Assembly (NCBI GenBank): GCA_002269645.1
Contig: NIVC01004394.1
Location: forward strand, 1-47,345
Length of the DNA stretch: 47,345 nucleotides
Direction of reading: 5' to 3'
Origin: Macrostomum lignano
Taxonomy: Eukaryota
The translations under genes and the position numbers were made by a program. The stretch's first letter is position 1; each line of letters begins with the position of its first letter. The notes beneath the pieces were generated by a model. The model saw nothing but the letters and a program-made list of their open reading frames with translations, searched no databases and was not told where the DNA came from. Positions 340 to 27,500 of this stretch are shown here, one piece after another.

Positions 340-690
340 CTAACACGAGGTCTTTCCGGTGGCCTCTGATCGATCAAGTCTATGATTGTCCGTCTTGGTA
401 CATTCTTGACCCACCAGCTTGTTAGTCGCCTGTTGCAGATCATCGGCGTTCCATGGTAGTGTTGGCCGGATGCAGATACGATTTCTCCGTAGTATTAGGC
501 CACTAGCTAGCTTGATCAGGTAGTCGCGGTGTTTGCCTACCTCCACCACCACATCCCTCCGTTGCCACAGCTTTGTTGTCGGGTATTGTAGAACCAAAGT
601 CGAGCCAATTCTGATTCGGTCCAGACTTTTCTTGACTTGTCGTACTGCTGCATCACTGTCTTGTTAGTTTCAGATGCGGTCTGCTCCGCA
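340..690 (-). mobile_element. Ty3/Gypsy-like LTR retrotransposon remnant, integrase C-terminal region (frameshifted)
   Basis: Joining two minus frames near 630 gives QQYDKSRKSLDRIRIGSTLVLQYPTTKLWQRRDVVVEVGKHRDYLIKLASGLILRRNRICIRP, which fits the YD..A..L..L..G..V..Q...TK.W....V......R.Y.V....G....RNR..LR pattern of Gypsy integrase C-termini. No LTR identified. Confidence 0.65.
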
Positions 691-699
691 TCTGAAGCG

Positions 700-2229
700 G
701 AGGCGGAGGCGGTTGAGAGAGGCCACGACGGGCGGGCGACCATACAGCTGCAACTGGACCACGATAGGCAGATGATCGGAGCCGAGATCCTCCCCGACTG
801 ACCAGTCGGCGCAGTTGCCATCCGGGGATGAGCAATGTTCACGTCCAGGGAGCTGAGCCCGCCGGTGTTGCGGTTGACGTGGGTCGCCGCGCCGTCGTTG
901 CAGGTGGTCATGTTGTTGTGCAGGAGCCACTCTTCGGGGGCGTCAGGTGGCTGCACAGGTCCCACAGGGGGGAGTGGGCGTTAAAGGCGCCGTAGATTAG
1001 CCAGCCCGCTGGCTGCCGCTGGCAGCAGCCGCCAGGTGGGCTCTGGCTCGTCGGCGGCAGCCAGTGTCGACAAAGACCGATTGGACTTCCAGGGCGTTAC
1101 TGGCGCCGGCGGGTGGCAATGACGAGAAAGGTATCCGGTGGTTAATGAGCGTGAGGGGCCCGCCGGCCCGCGCCCATCGCTGCGGTCCAGGCGGACAGCG
1201 GCAAAGCCATGTGGCGGTTTGAAGTTGTCCTGGGGCCGAAGTTTAGTTTCTTGGTGACAGCTACGTCAATGTCCAGATTGGCCAGCGCTGCGCCGAGTTT
1301 GGAGAGCTTAGTCCGAATGCCGTCCGCGTTCCATTAAAGGATGCGGAGTTGTCCAGCTGCTGGCGGCGGGGCGGCTGGGGTAGCCGGGGCCGCAGCAGGA
1401 GGGGCCGCGGAACCCGCGCAGCTTTTGCAATGCCAATTCCGAGCCTCAGGGTTGTTGGCTTTGATCGGTGGAGCCCGGCGCACGCTTTGTGGGCGGTACG
1501 ACTGCAGGTGACACAGCGGAGGGGCACGGTGTTGGACCGGATGCGTTTGTGCAAAGACAGCAGTTGGTGGGGGTGCCGGCAGGGGCGGCCGTCAAGACAG
1601 GCCGCGGGCGGTCCGTGAAGGATGTCCGGGTCGCGGCCACCCGGAGACGGGCCCCGCAAAAAGCGTCGCACCGGTACCGCGAGGACTCGCTGCAAGCGCA
1701 GTGACAGGCCGCGCTCCAGCCGTCAGTTGTACAGTGGAGGTGGCTCCCCCTGCGGAGTTGGCCGCCGCAATGGGAGCAGGAAGTGCACTGGCAACGATCC
1801 CAGTAGGTTCGGCCGAGAGCGGGGGTTCGACGATGGTCCGGTGCAGGTGGCAGACGACTGAGCACGCTGGATTCTGCTGCAGGAGGTTGACAGTGGCAGC
1901 TGTTATTGCAGTGAGGGGCAGCGCAAGTCAGACCGGAGGCCCGGAGCGCAGAGCCCGCGCGCAGAGGGCGCAGCGCGGCAGAGGCGGCGGCAGGGCGCGC
2001 GGCCTGGGTTGCTCTCTATGTCCCCGGAGCGGCTGAGGCGCCAGCTGCAGATGTTGACAATGGCAGGCACTGGCTGAGGTTGGAACGAGGCACTCCACGG
2101 CCACCACTGTCGTCGGGCCGGGTCCGAGACCCGAGACCGGTGTGGGGGCCTGTACGGGTAGCATTCGTGTCCCATCGAAGAGAATGGATGAGACATGGGT
2201 CGCCGCGAAGAGGCTGCTACCACAACCAC
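700..2229 (-). mobile_element. 5' portion of an I-group (Ingi/Vingi-like) non-LTR retrotransposon: HDV-like ribozyme, 2A-like motif, 3 PHD-like modules, AP endonuclease; disrupted, RT absent
   Basis: Minus-strand translation across frameshifts: LSRSGDIESNPG (2002-2037); Cys/His modules (CALCARAL..TCAAPHCNNSCH; CSHCGGQLRRGSHLHC..CHCAC; CLC..RIRSNTVPLRCVTCSRTAHKAC); APE motifs LRIL*WNADGIRTKL (~1310-1350), NDGAATHVNRNTGGLSSLDV and GSDHLPIVVQL (~755-790). Confidence 0.8.
2157..2229 (-). ncRNA. HDV-like self-cleaving ribozyme fold at the retrotransposon 5' end (possibly degenerate)
   Basis: Minus strand: P2 GGTAGCA/TGCTACC (7 bp), P3 GCC/GGC, L3 TCTTCGC, P4 TCTCATC/GATGGGA, J4/2 CGAA, P1 GTGG-TT/GACCCAT (one bulge). 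The element order matches HDV ribozyme topology. Confidence 0.7.
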
Positions 2230-2845
2230 GGGCTGCTGTTGCTGCCCTTCTCGACATCAGCTTTATCAACGACGAATAGGCGCGCGACCTTTACCCTGAA
2301 AGACCGCCGGATCAATCTCATCTGTGTGTACGCACCGACTAGCCCGCAAAAGAGTGAAGACAGCGAGACCACCGTCGATCTTTACAGAACTCTGAGACAG
2401 ATCTGCAGCTCTTTACCGGACCGCGACGCTAGCTCTCTTCATTATGGAAGATTTCAATGCTCCCCTTGCGGTTGACGGCGAGCTGGTTAAGAACCAATGT
2501 GGACGTTTGAATGCCAACTCTCCTTTCCTGACCGACTTCATCACCTCGGAGTAGCTGATTCTTCTTGATGGCTACTTTCGGCAGCGTTCTGCTAAAGCTG
2601 CCCATCTTTTAAGGTATCAACGGCGTGTCACTCGCCTTGACTGGCTGCTTTGTCCGAAGCACATAAAGCACATGGCAAAGGTGATCAATATTAGGTCCAA
2701 GTGCCTTCCGTCCGACCACTCTGTGGACGCCTGTGACGTCGACTTTCGCTGGCACACCAACAAAATTAGCAACCGCCCTTTTCCTCTCTGGGCTGATCTC
2801 CGCAACCCAGATACGAGGACCAATTTTGTTCAAAAGCCTCCTAAA
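2230..2845 (+). mobile_element. Second non-LTR retrotransposon (RTE-like) AP endonuclease fragment, pseudogenised
   Basis: GLLLLP..RATF..INLICVYAPT, then after a frameshift LFIMEDFNAPL, TRLDWLLC and PSDHS. These are APE motifs, with one in-frame TAG near 2550. Confidence 0.75.
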
Positions 2846-8149: not shown

Positions 8150-9459
8150 CGAGGGTTGTTCGACAAGTTCGTGGATAAACTTATTTTTTTTCCAAATGAA
8201 AGACAGTTAAGTCACCATACTTCAGACCATAGACAGCACTTATGCCCCACAACTTTTAATGGTAGTGCGATCAAATATGCTTATGCTATTTTTTACAGCA
8301 GTCATTTTAAGTTACCCACTGTTTTTGGCACTATGGAAAAAAATGAAGAAGCCAAGCAAAGCATAATTTAGTTCTTATGGAAGGAAGGGAAGCGACAGGC
8401 CGACATTGTTCGCGAGTTGCATGCAGCATATGGTGAAGATGCCCCTTCAAAGTCGATGGTCAGCAAGTGGGTGCAGCGGTTTGAGGATGGCTGGGAGACA
8501 GTCGAAGATCTGCCATGCAGTGGAAGGCCAGCCACCACGGTCAACATGTTCAACATTGAGCGCGTGCGTCAGGCACTTGATGTCGACCACCGGATCATCG
8601 TGCGTGAACTGGCAGAGACTGTGGGTATATCACCCACAGCAGTTCACGAAATTCTCATGGCCAAGCTTGGGATGTCGCGAGTTGTTGCTCGTTGGGTCCC
8701 GAAGCTTCTGACAGATGATCAGCAGCGCGGGCAGGTCCGTGCATGTCAGCAGCTCCTGCAGGCCTACCACAACGACCCGAACTTTTTGGATCGAATTGTG
8801 ACTGGGGATGAGTCGTGGATTCATTACAGTGAGCCAGAGTCGAAGATGCAGAGCAGCGTCTGGAAGGCAGCTGGAGAACCCACCCCAGTGAAGGCCCTGG
8901 CTGCACCATCGGCTGGAAAGCAGATGGCCACCATCTTCTGGGACAAGGAGGGCATCCTGCTCATCGACTGGCTTCCACGTGGCACTACCATTACCAGTGC
9001 TTATTACATCCGAGTGCTGGAGAAGTTGCGCCAAGCAATCAAGACTGAGCACCGGGGCAAGCTGACCAGGGGGATCCTGCTGCAGCAGGACAACGCCAGG
9101 CCCCATACCAGCCAAGCAACAATGGCTGCCAAGAGCCTGGGCTTCGAGCTGCTGCCGCACCCACCCTACTCGCCAGACCTAGCACCGAGCGACTACTGGC
9201 TGTTTGGGCGGATGAAGGAGTCACTCCGGGGTCACCATTATGGCAGCATACAGGCCCTAGCCTCTGCCGTCAGCCAGTGGGTCAGAAGTACCCCCAAAGA
9301 ATTCTTTGCTGCAGGGATTAAAAAGCTACCAGAGCGCTGGCACAAGTATGTGTGCCTCAAGGGCACATACATTGAGAAGGTCGATGACTAAGGTTTTCAG
9401 TTTTGTTGCTTGTTTAACAATAGTTCATGTTTGTCCACAAACTTTCCGAACAACCCTCG
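8150..9459 (+). mobile_element. Full-length mariner element (irritans/Hsmar2-like TIR), TA TSD
   Basis: TIR CGAGGGTTGTTCGACAAGTTCGTGGATAAAC at 8150 versus reverse complement of the right end CGAGGGTTGTTCGGAAAGTTTGTGGACAAAC (4 mismatches), ending at 9459. Flanked by TA at 8148-8149 and 9460-9461; 1310 bp. Confidence 0.95.
8333..9391 (+). pseudogene. Mariner transposase with one early nonsense codon (TAG 8369-8371)
   Basis: ATG 8333 (MEKNEEAKQSII*FLWKEGK...) is in frame with the 8417-9391 ORF. Motifs WVPKLL, TGDESW, QDNARPH and YSPDLAPSD are present; spacing between the 2nd and 3rd catalytic D is 33 aa. Confidence 0.9.
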
Positions 9460-11441: not shown

Positions 11442-14400
11442 ATGTCCGCTTCGTTACCTGACCAAGCCACACCAGCTGTTAGTGGCGGAGTCAGCAGCGA
11501 CGGAGGCGGAGGGACTTGTGGCAGCATATTCGACACTCTGGTTGACGATTTGCAGTCGGAAGTCACTAGCGATGGAAAGTCTAGAATTTCTCAGGTACAT
11601 CGATTGTGATCTGTCAATAATATATATTATGTTTTGTTCTATAAATTTGTTCGCTTTTGCAAGCTCGAAACCTCACAAGCTCAAAACCCCAATCTCGAAC
11701 CTCATCAAGCTCAAAACCTCAATCTCGAACCTCACAAGCTCAAAACCTCAATCTCGAACCTCACAAGCTCGAAACCTCATCAATCTGGAACCTCATAAGC
11801 TCAAAACCTCAATCTCGAACCTCACAAGCTCGAAACCCCATCAATCTGGAACCTCATAAGCTCAAAACCTCAATCTCGAACCTCACAAGCTCAAAAATTC
11901 AATCTCGAACCTCACAAGCTCAAAACCTCAATCTCGAACCTCACAAGCTCAAAAATTCAATCTCGAACCTCACAAGCTCAAAACCTCAATCTTGAACCTC
12001 ATAAGCTCAAAAACTCAATCTGGAACCTCACAAGCTCAAAAACTCAATCTGGAACCTCACAAGCTCAAAACCTCAATCTGGAACCTCATAAGCTCAAAAA
12101 CTCAATCTGGAACCTCATAAGCTCAAAACCTCAATCTCGAACCTCACAAGCTCAAAAATTCAATCTCGAACCTCACAAGCTCAAAACCTCAATCTCGAAC
12201 CTCACAAGCTCAAAAATTCAATCTCGAACCTCATCAAGCTCGAAACCTCAATCTCGAACCTCACAAGCTCAAAAATTCAATCTCGAACCTCACAAGCTCA
12301 AAACCTCAATCTCGAACCTCACAAGCTCAAAACCTCAATCTGGAACCTCATAAGCTCAAAAACTCAATCTGGAACCTCACAAGCTCAAAACCTCAATCTG
12401 GAACCTCATAAGCTCAAAAACTCAATCTGGAACCTCACAAGCTCAAAAACTCAATCTCGAACCTCACAAGCTCAAAACCTCAATCTCGAACCTCACAAGC
12501 TCAAAAATTCAATCTCGAACCTCACAAGCTCAAAACCTCAATCTCGAACCTCACAAGCTCAAAAACTCAATCTCGAACCTCACAAGCTCAAAACCTCGTC
12601 GCAAGCTCTAAACCTCAAGCTCTAAACCTTACAAGCTCATAACTTTAGGCCCTAAACCTCACAAGGTCGAAATTTCTCATTGTCGAAAAAATGGTTTTAG
12701 ATGTGAACTGGCGTTAGCGCCATGCTATTGGACAATTGTGCAATTTCGTCTGGATCCCTGTTGAGATTAAATCTGTTTAATTGCATTATTAATCAATTCG
12801 TCCCCAGGTTCAGGCAATAGTTGAGCGCATGAGCGATCTGGAGCGACTGCTGCTGTACCTGCAACTGCCGAATGGCTTTGCAGCAAATAACGCCGATGCC
12901 GCGGCTGTGCAAGTCAGCGGAGGCGCCCTGCAGCTTAGCAACCAGCTGGAGCAGTCGCAGGCTTTCACGTGGATTCAGTCGCATCTAGAAGAGGATGCTA
13001 GTATATGCTTGCGCAAAGATGAGGTTTATAGTGACTATCGGTGAGTTTCTCAATCATTTGGTCACTTGTTAGCATTCGTGATGCTCGCTCTAAAGTGCGT
13101 TTTCACTGCTGACAAAATGCTCTCCTATGAACTGATAACAGGTGCTACTGCGACAGCCACGGTCAGAAAGCTCTGAACACTGCCGACTTTGGCAAAGTAA
13201 TGAAGCGCGCTTTCCCCAATGTCAAACCGCGCCGCTTAGGCCAGCGTGGTCAATCGAAATATTGCTACGGAGGTCTGCGCAAGAAAACTGACCTGCCGCA
13301 TCCGATTATGCCGGATTTGACACTGGCTGAACTGGACTGTGCCAATGCGAATGCTGCCTCTAATACTGGTAAGCTTATAGCATTCAGTCCTGACTGCTCT
13401 GTCTGGCTGTCTAAGAGAGGACAGTGAATGCATACCTGACTGCTGGTTTGGAGCTTGATGTTTGTGAAATTAAATATTGTGATATTGAATATGGTGATTT
13501 TAGTTCTTAGTCTATGGTGAATTTGAACTCTGCTGGGGTTATAGCCTAGTAGTTAGAGCGTCGGGCCATGGACTTCTATACTTAGCATTCTATAGATGCT
13601 AAGTATAGAAGTCCATGGTCGGGCTCACGACTGAAAGGTCGGGGGTTCGAGTCTCCACCCACTCGGAACAATTTGTGTCCCCGAGTGTGACACTTCAGTT
13701 CATCCAGCTGTAAAATGGGTGCCAGCTTTAGCTGGGGTAATTAACGGTGTATGTGGCTACCCCCCTCCCTAGTCCTTGGACTTGACAACCGTACGCAGCC
13801 TTCAGATGCAATAGGCAAAAAGTATACGAGTAGTTTGCTACTTGCTAATTTGCGGTTCTGAAGCCTTAGAAAGAATAATCGTCGCAGTTGTCTGTGGTCC
13901 AGGTTGGGACTGTACTCAATGAAAAAAATCCCTAGGGTAATTCTCTAGGATGGGGCTTTATTATGTTGGGAATCGAACGCAGGGACTTTGACGATAAGCT
14001 AGATCTACGGCTATTATTTAACTTTGCTTGCTTAATACTTTTTATGATGCAGGCAATCTCAGCAGCTCCGGTGCGATTAGCGGCAGTGGAGGAGGCGGCA
14101 GTGGCTCAAGCGAAGACTCAATCTACAGCGAAATCATACTGGAATGGGCGCAGAAAATCATGGGCTGCCAGTTTTACAATTTGCGCCAATTGGCTGAACA
14201 CCTGGTCACGAATATGTACGTGAACTCGCGCTCTCCTGCTGCAATGACTCTGTTCTCTAGTCTGCAGTCCCGCAGTCAGCAGCGCTTGTCTGTTTCGCAT
14301 CTGATTGGGCTGAGAGCTGCCGCGGCTGCTGCCGCTGCGGCCGCTGCTGCCACCTCTAACGACAGCGTCAAGGTTGAGGGAACTGGAACTTCGATGGCAT

Positions 14401-24599: not shown

Positions 24600-27500
24600 T
24601 CAAACGAATCTCAGATGCTTGTTCAGTGGACCTCTGTGCTGCTCAGCGCAGCCAGGTGGGCTCTGATTGAGAGCGTGGCCGTGCTCTCCGCTGCCTCCTC
24701 CAGAAGCTGCTTTAATGACACCGCACACTTCTCGATTCATCAGCTCCAGCTGGATTGGGGCCTGCTTGTTTTGCTTTCGCTGCTGCTGCTGCAGGTGTCT
24801 CTGCTGCTGTTGCTTCTGCAGCTGCTGCAGATGGTGCTGGTGAGGATGATGAGGAATCGCCACAGCCGCTGCAGCTGCCCGCTGCAGCATGAGGTGTTTG
24901 GTTCGGTCCGAGTCGGACGAGTCAAAGCGGATCACCCTGGCGGGTGGCTTCTTCCGTCTCCGGATGGCGTACATCATGTTGCGGCGAAAGTTTCTGCTCC
25001 ACACGCAGTAGATGAAGAAATTGATGGCAGAGTTGAACAGAGTGAGCAGGGAGCCGATGGAATAAAGGTACGAATTGAACCACGTCTGATCGTCGAAGCT
25101 GGTATCCAGGAGGATGTGCCATACAGCACCGGGGATTTCCGTGGTCACAAACACGGCTATGATGACCACCAGCATTTTTGTTTCCTCGGTGCGTCTCGTT
25201 GTCTCCCGAGTAATCGCCGCTCGAATTCTCGACGCGATGAGTAGGCTGCGAATCAGTAGTATGTTGAACGCTGTGAGTACTAGCATTGGACCAACGGTGA
25301 GGAACAAAATGTACATTATCTTCTTGTAGAGCAGCATGTACACGAAGCCCAGGCGCTTGGGGTTCGGCTGAAGGATTTGGAGCTGCAGGCACTGATGCAG
25401 CTCGGACTTGTACTCAAACAGCAGGGGAATATTGTAGACCAGTGCCGTGCAGGTCACAGCGACGCAGTAGATGCGCGACCGCTGCGGGTTGCTGCGCTGC
25501 GTCGAGTAGAACGGATTCTGCACCACCATGTAGCGGTCCAGGGCCACCAGCAGGATGACCCAGTTGCGGCCAGTCCGAGCCACGCTGCCAAAGTACCACA
25601 GCAGCGGCAGCAGCGGCTGCGCTCCGGTGGTCGCGTGCAGTCTCGTCTGCAAGGTGACGCCGTCCGAAAGCTTGACAACTGCGCCCAGGCCCATGTAGAC
25701 AACATAGTAGGGCGCCGAGATCAGGATGAAGATTAGATCGACTGCGGGATGAGCAGCAAAGAGCATTATGAGAAACACTAGCAAAGTAAGTAAACGATTT
25801 CTCGAAGAAGCACCGTGATCTCGCCATGAATAGAATAGAACTCAGAATCTGCATAAAAGCCGTATTTGAACCCAGTGCAAGGTAGCCCAAGGCCCAGAAC
25901 TGCTAGCTGGTCTATCAGATTATGTTCAGCTGCATTTACTAACCGTTGCCAGCCCTCCTTAACTTGCGGCGAGTGGCTGACCCACCTGACCCACCATGTT
26001 TGCCATCGCAGCTCCATTCAAGACAGCTTGGCTGACCTATATTTTGCTCACCTTCTGTGCACTTTTGTGCAACTTTGTACTGCAACCACTGCAGAAATTT
26101 TTGCAGCATACATGTACTTTTCGGGCTCGTTCAATAGACCCTGCAAGCTTTGTGGTAGTTATGTGGCGGGGCAAGGAATCGAACCATGGGCCGTGAGGCA
26201 AAATCAGAGAAATGACCAGGAGCACAAGGCTGACGTCATTAAACTCGGGATAAGGGGTGATTGACAGCAACAAAGCAACAGTGTTTGAAGCATTATGGAG
26301 CATTCGCGTTGTAAAACTTGAAGTAACTACGACGAGCCGTGTTTCTACATTAATTAGTCGAGGCAAAATGCAGCACCATAATATTTCGTATCTTGTCAAT
26401 TGTGAGTCACTCTATCACACTGTCATTTGAACGGATTTTGGCAATGTCATTAAAGAGAAATTTCAGTCCGAACTCGCGGGGTTGTAAATACTTACATGCA
26501 GCAGCATGATATATTCTACACAGCAGTTGGGCACCCTTCGGCTCAATCAAAGCTGCCGGAAAATGGCAAGGAAGCTTCGTGTGCCAAGAAAATATCGATT
26601 TTCCTCCCAGTGAATAGCCGGTCTGAGAGCAGAGACGCTGCACTGGGTCTCCCAGGCCTGTGCGGCCTCTCTCTGCACTGTTGGGGCCGCCACTGTGTTG
26701 TTAAAGTTTGCCCAGTGTTAGGTTGACAAACAGTTCCCAGCAGTGGACCAGGGAAAGAGAGATGCGAGAGAAATCAGTCAGCCTTAGGAGCAACATGTGG
26801 ACCGCTGCCCGCCAGGTCCAGAAACAGAACACATTGGGGAAGGCTGAGGATTTGAACGGTGAGGCTGGTTTAGAAATGAAGATGCCTAAAATACAATAAT
26901 CCCATACAGCTTATGACTCACTCACTCACTCATCACTCGCTCACTCACTCACTCACTCACTCACTCATCACTCACCCATCACTCACTCACTCACTCACTC
27001 ACTCACTCACTCACTCACTCACTCACTCACTCACTCATCACTCATCACTCATCACTCACCAACTCACTTCGGTCTCTGTCCTAACTCAATGCAGTGAGGA
27101 GTGGCCAAACTCTAGCAGCCTTACTCTTCTGAGATCGAATCCCAAATTCACTATTTCGACAATATAGCTTCGCTTTTCACAATCAGTTTTAGACTATTAT
27201 GGTTTTGAAAATCACGTCATCCCTTTTTAAGTCATCTTTTTTTATTTCCGCTCGTCTCTCGCGTCTTTCCGCCATACGGCAACTGTTGACGGATTTTCAG
27301 ATAATCTTCTTCATTCGAAGTCTTTCAGTCCCGGAAGCTCAGGGCAGGTGCTAAGCCTTCCATGCAAATGGTAGCTATTAGAGGGTGGCAATAAAATTCG
27401 AGCTGTGCAACCCGAAGACTCGTAGAGCAGGTGCGTGGGCAGTTCTATCGCTGCAAAAGACTGAAAACTGCAAGCTAAATATTAGTTCTAGGAATCTAAG

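Follow-up and report, generated by a model that had tools for sequence, protein, structure and literature searches.

The segment read from position 2229 to 2157 on the minus strand of the window, i.e., the entire 47,345-nucleotide stretch of Macrostomum lignano DNA analyzed here, is proposed, at a probability of roughly 0.7, to be the decayed remnant of a self-cleaving ribozyme with an HDV-like double pseudoknot, which makes up the initial ~70 nt of an Ingi-like LINE. Directly observed are the fold and the compensatory changes with which it is conserved, its location with respect to both a 2A motif and the 5' junction, and the order of the encoded domains; the annotation of 2157 to 2229 as a degenerate ribozyme copy draws on a helix table, a descriptor null, alignment to three related loci (L027, L033, and L034), and a covariance model. 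A sequence-only reading of this DNA had proposed that an Ingi/Vingi-like LINE starts with an HDV-like ribozyme here, a claim whose core is supported by homologous RNAs situated upstream of 2A motifs, by compensatory changes, and by sub-threshold Rfam matches to HDV-type families at the same coordinates.

Predicted fold of the window copy

Direct readout of the window gave the 73-nt minus-strand segment (2229 to 2157) as GTGGTTGTGGTAGCAGCCTCTTCGCGGCGACCCATGTCTCATCCATTCTCTTCGATGGGACACGAATGCTACC, precisely as it had been written in the sequence-only reading. Along this strand, the 5' strand of P1 (2229 to 2224, pairing with 2201 to 2195) is followed by J1/2 (2223 to 2222), the 5' strand of P2 (2221 to 2215, pairing with 2163 to 2157), P3 (2214 to 2212, pairing with P3' at 2204 to 2202), the 7-nt loop L3 (UCUUCGC, 2211 to 2205), P3' itself, P1' (2201 to 2195), a J1/4 consisting of a single G at 2194, the P4 hairpin (2193 to 2170), J4/2 (CACGAA, 2169 to 2164), and P2' (2163 to 2157). 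P2 comprises seven Watson-Crick pairs, P3 three G-C pairs (GCC/GGC), and P4 seven pairs, one being G.U; the pairing table confirmed that the 7-bp P2, P3, L3, the 7-bp P4, and the CGAA of J4/2 fall in HDV order, as previously described. The HDV succession of strands P1, P2, P3, P3', P1', P4, and P2', which constitutes a nested double pseudoknot, is shared by the window and five relatives. Furthermore, the window displays the L3 signature (a 3-bp G/C-rich P3 and a loop of ~7 nt with U first and G sixth) as well as the C-N-R-A signature of the catalytic cytosine in J4/2 before P2', here CGAA, the candidate catalytic C of which lies at 2167.

P1 consists of six pairs, with G at +1 and a G.U first pair, and is non-canonical as it stands because of a bulged C in its 3' strand. 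In P1.1, the lone G at 2194 could pair with either a C or a U of L3, an ambiguous register which affords at most one pair. The minimum-free-energy fold of the segment shows P2, P3, and P4, with a z-score of only -1.4. The bulged P1, the single P1.1 pair at most, and the fact that all Rfam matches fall below gathering thresholds are observations that count against a ribozyme.

Architecture of the element on the minus strand

An ORF of 108 codons (1903 to 2229, minus strand) runs through the ribozyme into a degenerate 2A-like ribosome-skipping motif, GDIESNPGR (1999 to 2025, minus strand), the sole such motif in the window, in which the last P of NPGP is replaced by R; the relatives carry GDVERNPGP, GDVESNPGP, or GDIELNPG at this position. 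The ORF contains a GTG at 2223 to 2221, where L034 has an in-frame ATG, and in-frame ATGs at 2196 to 2194 and 2175 to 2173, while start codons lie inside the ribozyme segment in both L027 (the start of P0023) and L034 (ATG at 986 to 988). An ATG at 2164 to 2162 was considered as a conserved start and dropped, its frame in the window differing from that of the 2A motif and TGA being the next codon in L033 and L034; the equivalent start codon is used by L027 only. Residues 26 to 86 of P0023 matched window positions 2091 to 1918 in a tblastn search (E, 5e-4).

The 2A motif is followed on the same strand by frameshifted Cys/His zinc-finger (PHD/C1-like) repeats (1349 to 1998), which returned weak C1_1/PHD_4 matches, and by an APE-type endonuclease extending from LRIL.WNADG to GSDHLPIV (745 to 1348), which is interrupted by several frameshifts. 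PF14529 and PF03372 exceeded their cut-offs on the frame-corrected APE translation, and a search with this domain recovered 22 homologues. The element is cut off below ~700. Judging from its frameshifts, the NPGR in place of NPGP, the truncated 3' part, and the bulged P1, the window copy is a dead relic and probably inactive.

In P0015, P0013, P0023, and P0025, zinc fingers occupy the same place, after the 2A motif and ahead of the endonuclease, and are intact, and the layout of the relatives reads ribozyme, 2A peptide, zinc fingers, APE, RT, and RNase H. Matches to RVT_1 and RNase_H were obtained in the relatives L026 and L030, the window retaining APE only. Vingi elements are said, in work by Kojima and coworkers from 2011, to lack RNase H. 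Because the relatives encode RT and RNase H, assignment to the Ingi or I group is plausible and assignment to Vingi is not, and of the earlier Ingi/Vingi label only the former half is retained. The 2A motif has been described for Ingi and also occurs in CR1, L2, Rex1, and Crack elements (PMC3708506).

Relatives carrying the same RNA

The comparative evidence carries the most weight. The comparison set comprised six sequences: the window, L027, L033, L034, L002, and L026. Sequence-level alignment with the window segment was obtained at L027 42 to 109, L033 494 to 560, and L034 981 to 1046 (all GCA_052426985.1). A covariance model built from these three and the window, with P1 left out, scored the window segment, itself a member of the model, at 75.5 bits. 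Across 152 kb, the next best matches to this model were L002 2109 to 2185 and L026 1875 to 1963 (17.6 and 17.5 bits, respectively; E, ~0.04), the same two sites that had been chosen earlier by descriptor scan or by eye and which represent more distant relatives than L027, L033, and L034. In each element, ~135 to 325 nt separate the ribozyme, which is on the sense strand, from the 2A motif that follows it.

In the HDV-like structure, 92% of cells pair, as opposed to 35 to 51% with slid partners, and four pairs are changed on both sides, i.e., are compensatory. The window, L027, L002, and L026 have a full-length P2, whereas that of L033 and that of L034 each contain one internal mismatch, and the sequence of P2 varies among the six (GGUAGCA/UGCUACC, CGAUUGCA/UGCAAUCG, UGGGCACA/UGUGUCCA, and GGGCAGA/UCUGCCC, among others). 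Every one of the six sequences has a P1, which is a clean 6-bp helix in L027, L033, and L002 (the last with a U-A to A-U swap), a 5-bp helix in L034, and a strand-swapped 7-bp helix in L026, where it contains one mismatch and starts with C at +1. In five of the six sequences, the first nucleotide of L3 is U and the sixth is G; the P3/L3 pattern of the window recurs in L027, L034, and L026, with one P3 pair missing in L033 and an L3 of 9 nt in L002. The J4/2 signature reads CGAA in the window, L033, and L026, CAAA in L027, and CCAA in L002, and in L034, a presumably dead copy, it reads UGAA, with U replacing the C.

Additional copies of the window's own family were sought without success: blastn, tblastx, and pattern searches yielded no second copy in the window; a protein search with the window's leader/zinc-finger translation gave no match; an exact 20-mer of the ribozyme core returned 23 loci from metagenome_contigs and genome_contigs, all of them chance occurrences in G+C-rich bacterial DNA without extension; and pattern and protein scans of viral_contigs produced nothing relevant. 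The contigs of P0015, P0024, P0002, P0001, P0007, and P0005 either are 5' truncated or begin only past the point where the ribozyme would lie. These results bear on the suggestion that P1 and P1.1 become canonical if one G is restored to each of two G runs. The loss of a G from P1 is plausible, the relatives reading GGGG, and is unproven because no second copy of the window's exact family was found in these searches. P1 pairing and covariation are seen in the relatives, but the GG expected at J1/4 is not, as they read GA after P1', and the repair of P1.1 is thus unsupported. Nor would a one-pair P1.1, as has been accepted for L1TcRz (PMC3185411), call for such a repair.

The search with HDV-type models that had been advocated gave sub-threshold matches in the relatives and none at gathering in the window. 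L027 41 to 108 matched RF02682 (HDV-F-prausnitzii) end to end with 30.8 bits (E, 1.5e-4 for the stretch), the best of all Rfam matches and under the gathering threshold of 44 bits, while L034 979 to 1047 matched three HDV-type families, RF00094, RF02682, and RF00622, below threshold. An alternative nested fold pairs equally well on the four close sequences and is strong only in L033 and L034; this fold, the U of L034 in place of the J4/2 cytosine, and the limitation of the set to six sequences are further observations that count against a ribozyme.

As the ribozyme region is also coding, part of its conservation could be protein driven. It is conceivable, albeit unlikely, that the segment is simply a conserved 5' leader, acting as coding sequence, as a Pr77-like internal promoter, or as a protein- or ribosome-binding structure, whose HDV likeness is not tied to catalysis. 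Such a leader would be consistent with the 2A frame being open across the whole segment, with the start codons of L027 and L034 falling inside it, with the equal score of the alternative fold on four sequences, and with the dual nature of the first 77 nt of L1Tc, which constitute both promoter and ribozyme (PMC3383444). It does not account for the P1/P2 pairing being kept in L002 and L026 despite a different primary sequence, and hence peptide, nor for the alignment of three separate HDV-type Rfam models at these sites or for L3 and the CNRA junction being situated where a catalytic core would have them; moreover, a promoter or translation role would come on top of that of a ribozyme, as it does in L1Tc, instead of displacing it.

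Position of the 5' end

On the plus strand, a run beginning at 2230, GLLLLPFSTSAL, is similar to the GGG-L-L strand found in LINE endonucleases. It opens an endonuclease fragment (2230 to 2800, plus strand; GLLLLPF..., INLICVYAPT, EDFNAP, SDHS) which adjoins the first base of the ribozyme and which is assigned to a different LINE family because tblastn of the relatives against it gave no match. Placing the junction at 2229/2230, give or take a few bases, is plausible and not proven, since Pfam support on the plus strand is weak and starts from 2311 only (Exo_endo_phos_2; 17 bits; E, 0.0056). In L034, the flank is RNase H coding sequence of another LINE, with a YTDGS motif, whose homology to L026 and L030 ends at the boundary between GGG and TTGGGTCA, ~3 nt from P1. 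It is therefore the approximate rather than the exact placement at 2229 that stands: the motif run starting at 2230 and the similar junction of L034 agree with it, and the 5' end of the element is plausibly fixed only to within ~3 nt of the P1 start in the window and L034.

The sequence CAACGCAC is found directly upstream of P1 in both L027 and L033, and the true 5' end could thus sit a few bases further upstream. A GTT preceding the G run is common to L033 and L034 and can lengthen P1 to 9 bp in L033, the flanks are all CAA/CAG-like, and L026 possesses a (CAA)n tail. Each of the first three features would also be compatible with a genuine ribozyme family in which cleavage does not occur at the exact 5' end, either because the element extends upstream or because the flank is cleaved, as in some R2 elements; cleavage upstream has reportedly been documented in a study of R2 across many species. 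This possibility is considered slightly less probable still than that of a conserved leader, given that the RNase H homology of the L034 flank reaches to ~3 nt from P1, that CAA/CAG flanks are explained by a tail of the L026 type, with copies lying in tandem or target sites resembling the tail, and that the insertion sites of L1Tc/ingi, too, are preceded by conserved sequence.

Descriptor and Rfam searches

A strict descriptor (P2 of at least 7 bp, a G/C-only P3, a 7-nt L3, a P4 hairpin, and CNRA preceding P2'), which was set up only after the candidate had been seen, identified 2229 as the sole pass in the real window and gave no matches in 1.02 Mb of shuffled sequence. A loose descriptor, at ~1 match per 15 kb, gave 7 matches in the window and 69 in 1.02 Mb of dinucleotide shuffles. 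No Rfam match was obtained at gathering thresholds across the whole window; in E-value mode, the top match on a 106-nt stretch was a weak partial one to RF02682 (10.7 bits; E, 6.4). The only match returned for positions 1900 to 2500 in this mode was to an sRNA and was judged spurious, and a covariance-model match at 14267 to 14368 (10.4 bits) was discarded (GCN-repeat sequence, with no 2A downstream). Curated family models miss divergent HDV-like ribozymes. Descriptors, too, can miss them (PMC4035085).

That G+C-rich repeat DNA matches a permissive structural pattern here by chance, a view to which the frequency of loose-descriptor matches, the modest z-score, and the lack of Rfam matches at gathering would lend themselves, is highly improbable, considering the strict-descriptor null in shuffles and the sequence-level homologues at the same place in related elements, where HDV-type Rfam matches also occur; in our view, the homologues already refute it.

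Proposed mode of action

Based on the HDV-like ribozyme reading, an intact member of the family would be transcribed from its own 5' region or within a longer read-through transcript, and the nascent RNA would fold in the order P1-P2-P3-P1'-P4-P2'. The J4/2 cytosine (the C of CGAA/CAAA) would catalyze scission directly 5' of P1, and it is therefore proposed that the released RNA would start at the first base of the element, with a 5'-OH. The start codon embedded in the ribozyme would give rise to a short leader of ~45 to 65 aa ending in the 2A StopGo motif, which would split this leader from the zinc-finger/APE/RT/RNase H polyprotein, and reverse transcription of the processed RNA would copy the ribozyme into every new full-length insertion. 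Self-cleavage, the exact bond cleaved, and any translational role are what we infer.

Comparison with known systems

HDV-like ribozymes elude sequence search, and their retrotransposon spread is incompletely mapped. The CPEB3 ribozyme (RF00622) of mammals, to which L034 shows a partial sub-threshold match (20.2 bits), adopts the same fold and has a CGAA in J4/2 directly before P2' and a single-pair P1.1; in contrast to the RNAs described here, it is intronic, single-copy, and not located at a retrotransposon terminus. The bacterial RF02682 family (drz-Fpra-1 of Faecalibacterium prausnitzii) aligns with L027 over all 74 positions and has in common with it a 7-bp P1, a short P4, and a P3/L3 core (CCUCU.CGUGG) that hardly differs, although this family has no retrotransposon link and is matched only partially by the window, at 10.7 bits.

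The use of a 5' HDV-like ribozyme by other LINE families is already known, and the precedents invoked earlier, R2 and L1Tc/ingi, are borne out by the literature (PMC6765202, PMC3185411, PMC4035085). L1TcRz/Pr77 of Trypanosoma cruzi L1Tc and ingi is likewise an HDV-like ribozyme in the first ~70 to 77 nt of an APE-type LINE with RT and RNase H (PMC3185411, PMC4035085, PMC3383444). Further likenesses include a 2A near the N terminus of a long ORF, a P1.1 that is minimal (1 to 2 bp) and here only a candidate, a P1 extendable by flanking bases, conserved sequence upstream of insertion sites, and tandem copies. The present host is, however, an animal rather than a kinetoplastid, zinc-finger repeats lie between 2A and APE, and the likeness to L1TcRz rests on architecture and fold, not on sequence comparison with Pr77. 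R2 similarly carries a 5' double-pseudoknot HDV-like ribozyme on a non-LTR retrotransposon, which processes the co-transcript and has been proposed to aid translation of the uncapped RNA (PMC3774820, PMC6765202), whereas R2 is site specific in rDNA, employs a restriction-like endonuclease, lacks 2A, and has a larger ribozyme (~184 nt), in which J1/2 and P4 contain long insertions.

An N-terminal 2A is found in L1Tc/ingi and in the metazoan Ingi-1_AC, and metazoan 2A LINEs (Ingi-1_AC, CR1, Crack, Rex1) place it 40 to 80 aa from the N terminus of the long ORF, some of them likewise with a PHD-type domain between 2A and APE (PMC3708506). Ribozymes go unmentioned in the account of 2A-bearing LINEs by Odon et al. 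2013 (PMC3708506). What is new here is the link of a 2A leader with a predicted upstream HDV-like ribozyme in animal LINEs: elements with an N-terminal 2A and RNase H carry a putative 5' ribozyme, an arrangement known from trypanosome L1Tc/ingi, and such a ribozyme-plus-2A front end suggests either an old origin or repeated transfer. We tentatively consider that the 5' module may represent an ancestral, clade-wide cassette of Ingi-type LINEs, common to kinetoplastids and animals, in which self-cleavage would be mechanistically coupled to cap-independent leader translation, since one and the same RNA would act as ribozyme, as coding sequence, and as the site where ribosomes land.

For the annotation of such elements, the ribozyme provides a ready marker of full-length 5' ends. 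A start codon and a reading frame lie within the putative catalytic fold, a testable case of the same bases serving both RNA structure and coding, and the relatives represent compact natural ribozyme variants for biochemistry, some with a minimal P4.

An HDV-like ribozyme fold at the 5′ end of an Ingi-like LINE

The minus-strand segment of the window at 2229 to 2157 (73 nt), proposed in the sequence-only reading to be an HDV-like ribozyme, was re-read base for base, and its sequence was as originally written. In an HDV-like layout, it comprises the P1 5′ strand GUGGUU (2229 to 2224), the J1/2 linker GU, the P2 5′ strand GGUAGCA (2221 to 2215), P3 GCC, L3 UCUUCGC and P3′ GGC, followed by P1′ GACCCAU (2201 to 2195), a single G (2194), P4 (UCUCAUC and GAUGGGA around a 10-nt loop, 2193 to 2170), J4/2 CACGAA (2169 to 2164) and P2′ UGCUACC (2163 to 2157). 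Pairing is perfect in P2, P3 and P4, while P1 as sequenced consists of six pairs and one bulged C. The minimum-free-energy fold recovered P2, P3 and P4, with an unremarkable energy (z = −1.4).

A loose descriptor for HDV-like folds yields approximately one match per 15 kb. When the descriptor was made as strict as the candidate, 2229 was the sole match in the window and none occurred in 1.02 Mb of dinucleotide-preserving shuffles of the local G+C-rich sequence, a result which is supportive rather than decisive, as the filter was set after the candidate had been seen. Rfam searches at gathering scores returned no match in the window, and this copy gave a weak, partial match to the HDV-type family RF02682, as its broken P1 and different P4 would lead one to expect. 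A further ribozyme-model match at 14267 to 14368 (minus strand; 10.4 bits, E = 1.9), located in a GCN repeat with no 2A motif downstream, was dismissed as noise.

Conservation of the fold among relatives

No second copy of the window's family was found in the window or in the contig collections scanned; the endonuclease and the 2A/zinc-finger region do have relatives, but these are more distant. All share the order 2A, zinc fingers and APE endonuclease, with reverse transcriptase (RT) as well as RNase H beyond APE where contigs are long enough. The sequence upstream of 2A is present in five of these contigs, and an HDV-like fold was identified on the sense strand in all five, some 135 to 325 nt upstream of 2A as computed from coordinates. 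The folds of L027 (42 to 109) and L002 (2118 to 2175, the only strict match in its contig) matched the strict descriptor, those of L033 (494 to 560) and L034 (981 to 1046) were located by sequence alignment, and that of L026 (1885 to 1953) was parsed by eye, its helices then being checked. The window segment aligns at the sequence level with L027, L033 and L034 (assembly GCA_052426985.1); L027 has almost the window's version of the core GCCUCU.CG.GGCGACCC, from which L033 and L034 depart slightly.

When the four alignable sequences are scored against the HDV-like structure with its P1 pseudoknot, 92% of cells are paired, compared with 35 to 51% in a slid-partner control, and four pairs have changed on both sides. 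A covariance model built from the same sequences, restricted to P2, P3 and P4, scored its own members at 75 to 98 bits; in a search of 152 kb on both strands, the distant relatives L002 and L026 ranked next (17.6 and 17.5 bits, E about 0.04), at precisely the positions that had been selected by independent means. Although P1 had been left out of the model, it was found in both, with a U-A to A-U swap in L002 and an exchange of the G-rich and C-rich character of the strands in L026. Among curated Rfam models, which agree on the fold, L027 41 to 108 matched the whole of RF02682 (30.8 bits, E = 1.5e-4 for the stretch searched; below the gathering score), and L034 979 to 1047 gave subthreshold matches to RF00094, RF02682 and RF00622.

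RNAalifold preferred another nested fold for the four close sequences, one that pairs equally well in them, but duplex energies indicate that it is strong only in L033 and L034. An alternative hairpin joins the P2 5′ strand to the P3′/P1′ segment (columns 22 to 30 with 37 to 45 of alignment A2; L033 501 to 524, L034 988 to 1011), reaching −13.9 kcal/mol in L034 and being weak outside these two. The window, L027, L002 and L026 retain P2/P2′ at full length, and L033 and L034 each have a single internal mismatch in it. The hairpin might represent a misfold or a regulatory alternative to the HDV-like fold, of the kind reported for L1TcRz.

Individual copies also vary. L034 carries U at 1035 (UGAA in place of CGAA), where the other copies have the J4/2 C, and its P1 run is one G short, for which reasons it is likely inactive. 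In L002 (2118 to 2175), L3 is 9 nt long and the P4 position holds no more than 9 nt; this copy would, if active, be a natural near-P4-less variant.

The 5′ boundary of the element

Upstream of its fold, L034 is flanked by sequence encoding the RNase H of another LINE (YTDGSATGGTTAG); the homology of this flank to RNase H from L026 and L030 breaks off between GGG and TTGGGTCA, no more than about 3 nt from P1. In the window, 2230 to 2800 (plus strand) holds part of an APE domain from a different LINE (INLICVYAPT, EDFNAP, SDHS), lacking its N-terminal half in the window and head-to-head with the ribozyme LINE. Its GLLLLPF strand starts at 2230, but Pfam support, which is weak, is limited to the sequence from 2311 onward. 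The break in L034 and the start of this endonuclease motif at 2230 are both compatible with a junction where P1 begins.

Alternatively, and less probably, the element may begin a few bases upstream of P1, as CAACGCAC lies just upstream of P1 in both L027 and L033. Flanks upstream of every ribozyme are CAA/CAG-repeat-like (L026 1821 to 1890, window 2230 to 2245, L027 25 to 41, L033 478 to 493), and in L026 two copies lie in tandem, the (CAA)9-rich 3′ tail of the first abutting the ribozyme of the second. Tail-like target sites or tandem insertion would thus best explain both these flanks and the shared CAACGCAC. L1Tc/ingi elements, too, are known to occur in tandem and to have conserved sequence on the upstream side of their insertions.

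Reading frame and proposed function

An open frame runs on the minus strand from 2229 through the ribozyme to the only 2A-like StopGo motif in the window, GDIESNPGR (2025 to 1999; last residue R, not P), 204 nt downstream from where the ribozyme begins. The called ORF start of L027 is an AUG at 101 to 103, spanning J4/2 and P2′, while alignment and frames place an in-frame AUG of L034 at 986 to 988, spanning J1/2 and P2. The corresponding codon in the window is GUG (2221 to 2223), and AUGs in the same frame occur at 2196 to 2194 and 2175 to 2173. Start codons of the 2A frame thus lie inside the ribozyme, their place varying by subfamily, and the ribozyme is therefore also coding sequence.

Self-cleavage, the bond cleaved and any role in translation are predicted as follows. 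By analogy with R2 and L1Tc (PMC6765202, PMC3185411), the ribozyme is expected to cut the nascent transcript at the 5′ edge of the fold, setting the 5′ end of the element RNA wherever transcription began. Translation would then yield a short leader, which the 2A motif is presumed to release from the zinc-finger/APE/RT/RNase H protein.

R2, L1Tc and other LINEs are already established carriers of HDV-like ribozymes at their 5′ ends (PMC7761336); a survey of animal LINEs with a 2A motif contains no mention of ribozymes (PMC3708506). Most similar is L1TcRz/Pr77 of trypanosome L1Tc/ingi, which shares the position and the association with a 2A peptide and has the minimal P1.1 and the sensitivity to P1 extension by flanking bases that are predicted for the present elements; the latter are set apart by their animal host and zinc-finger repeats. 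Of the proposed label Ingi/Vingi-like, the "Ingi-like" part agrees with the evidence from RNase H and 2A, on which it is based rather than on RT phylogeny, and the "Vingi" part does not fit.

State and surroundings of the window copy

Judged by its sequence, the window copy is a relic, given that frameshifts interrupt its zinc-finger and APE regions, that NPGR replaces NPGP, that RT is missing and that P1 is bulged. Restoring one G in P1, as had been suggested, is plausible because relatives have GGGG there, whereas a GG after P1′ is unsupported, relatives having GA. Downstream of the 2A motif, Cys/His zinc-finger-like repeats are followed by the APE endonuclease (minus strand; LRIL.WNADG at 1348 to GSDHLPIV at about 745), which contains several frameshifts and, once frame-corrected, exceeds Pfam cutoffs and has 22 homologues. 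The LINE ends below about 700, where an integrase C-terminus-like ORF of an LTR-type element (340 to 700, minus strand; …VVVEVGKHRDYLIKLASGLILRRNRICIRP) takes the place of the LINE downstream of APE; Pfam gave no match to this ORF. Elsewhere, 8417 to 9391 (plus strand) encodes an uninterrupted 324-aa mariner/Mos1-type transposase (Transposase_1, HTH_48), and 24600 to 25784 (minus strand) a 394-aa single-exon rhodopsin-family GPCR (7tm_1, Srw-like), which shows that the window DNA is animal.
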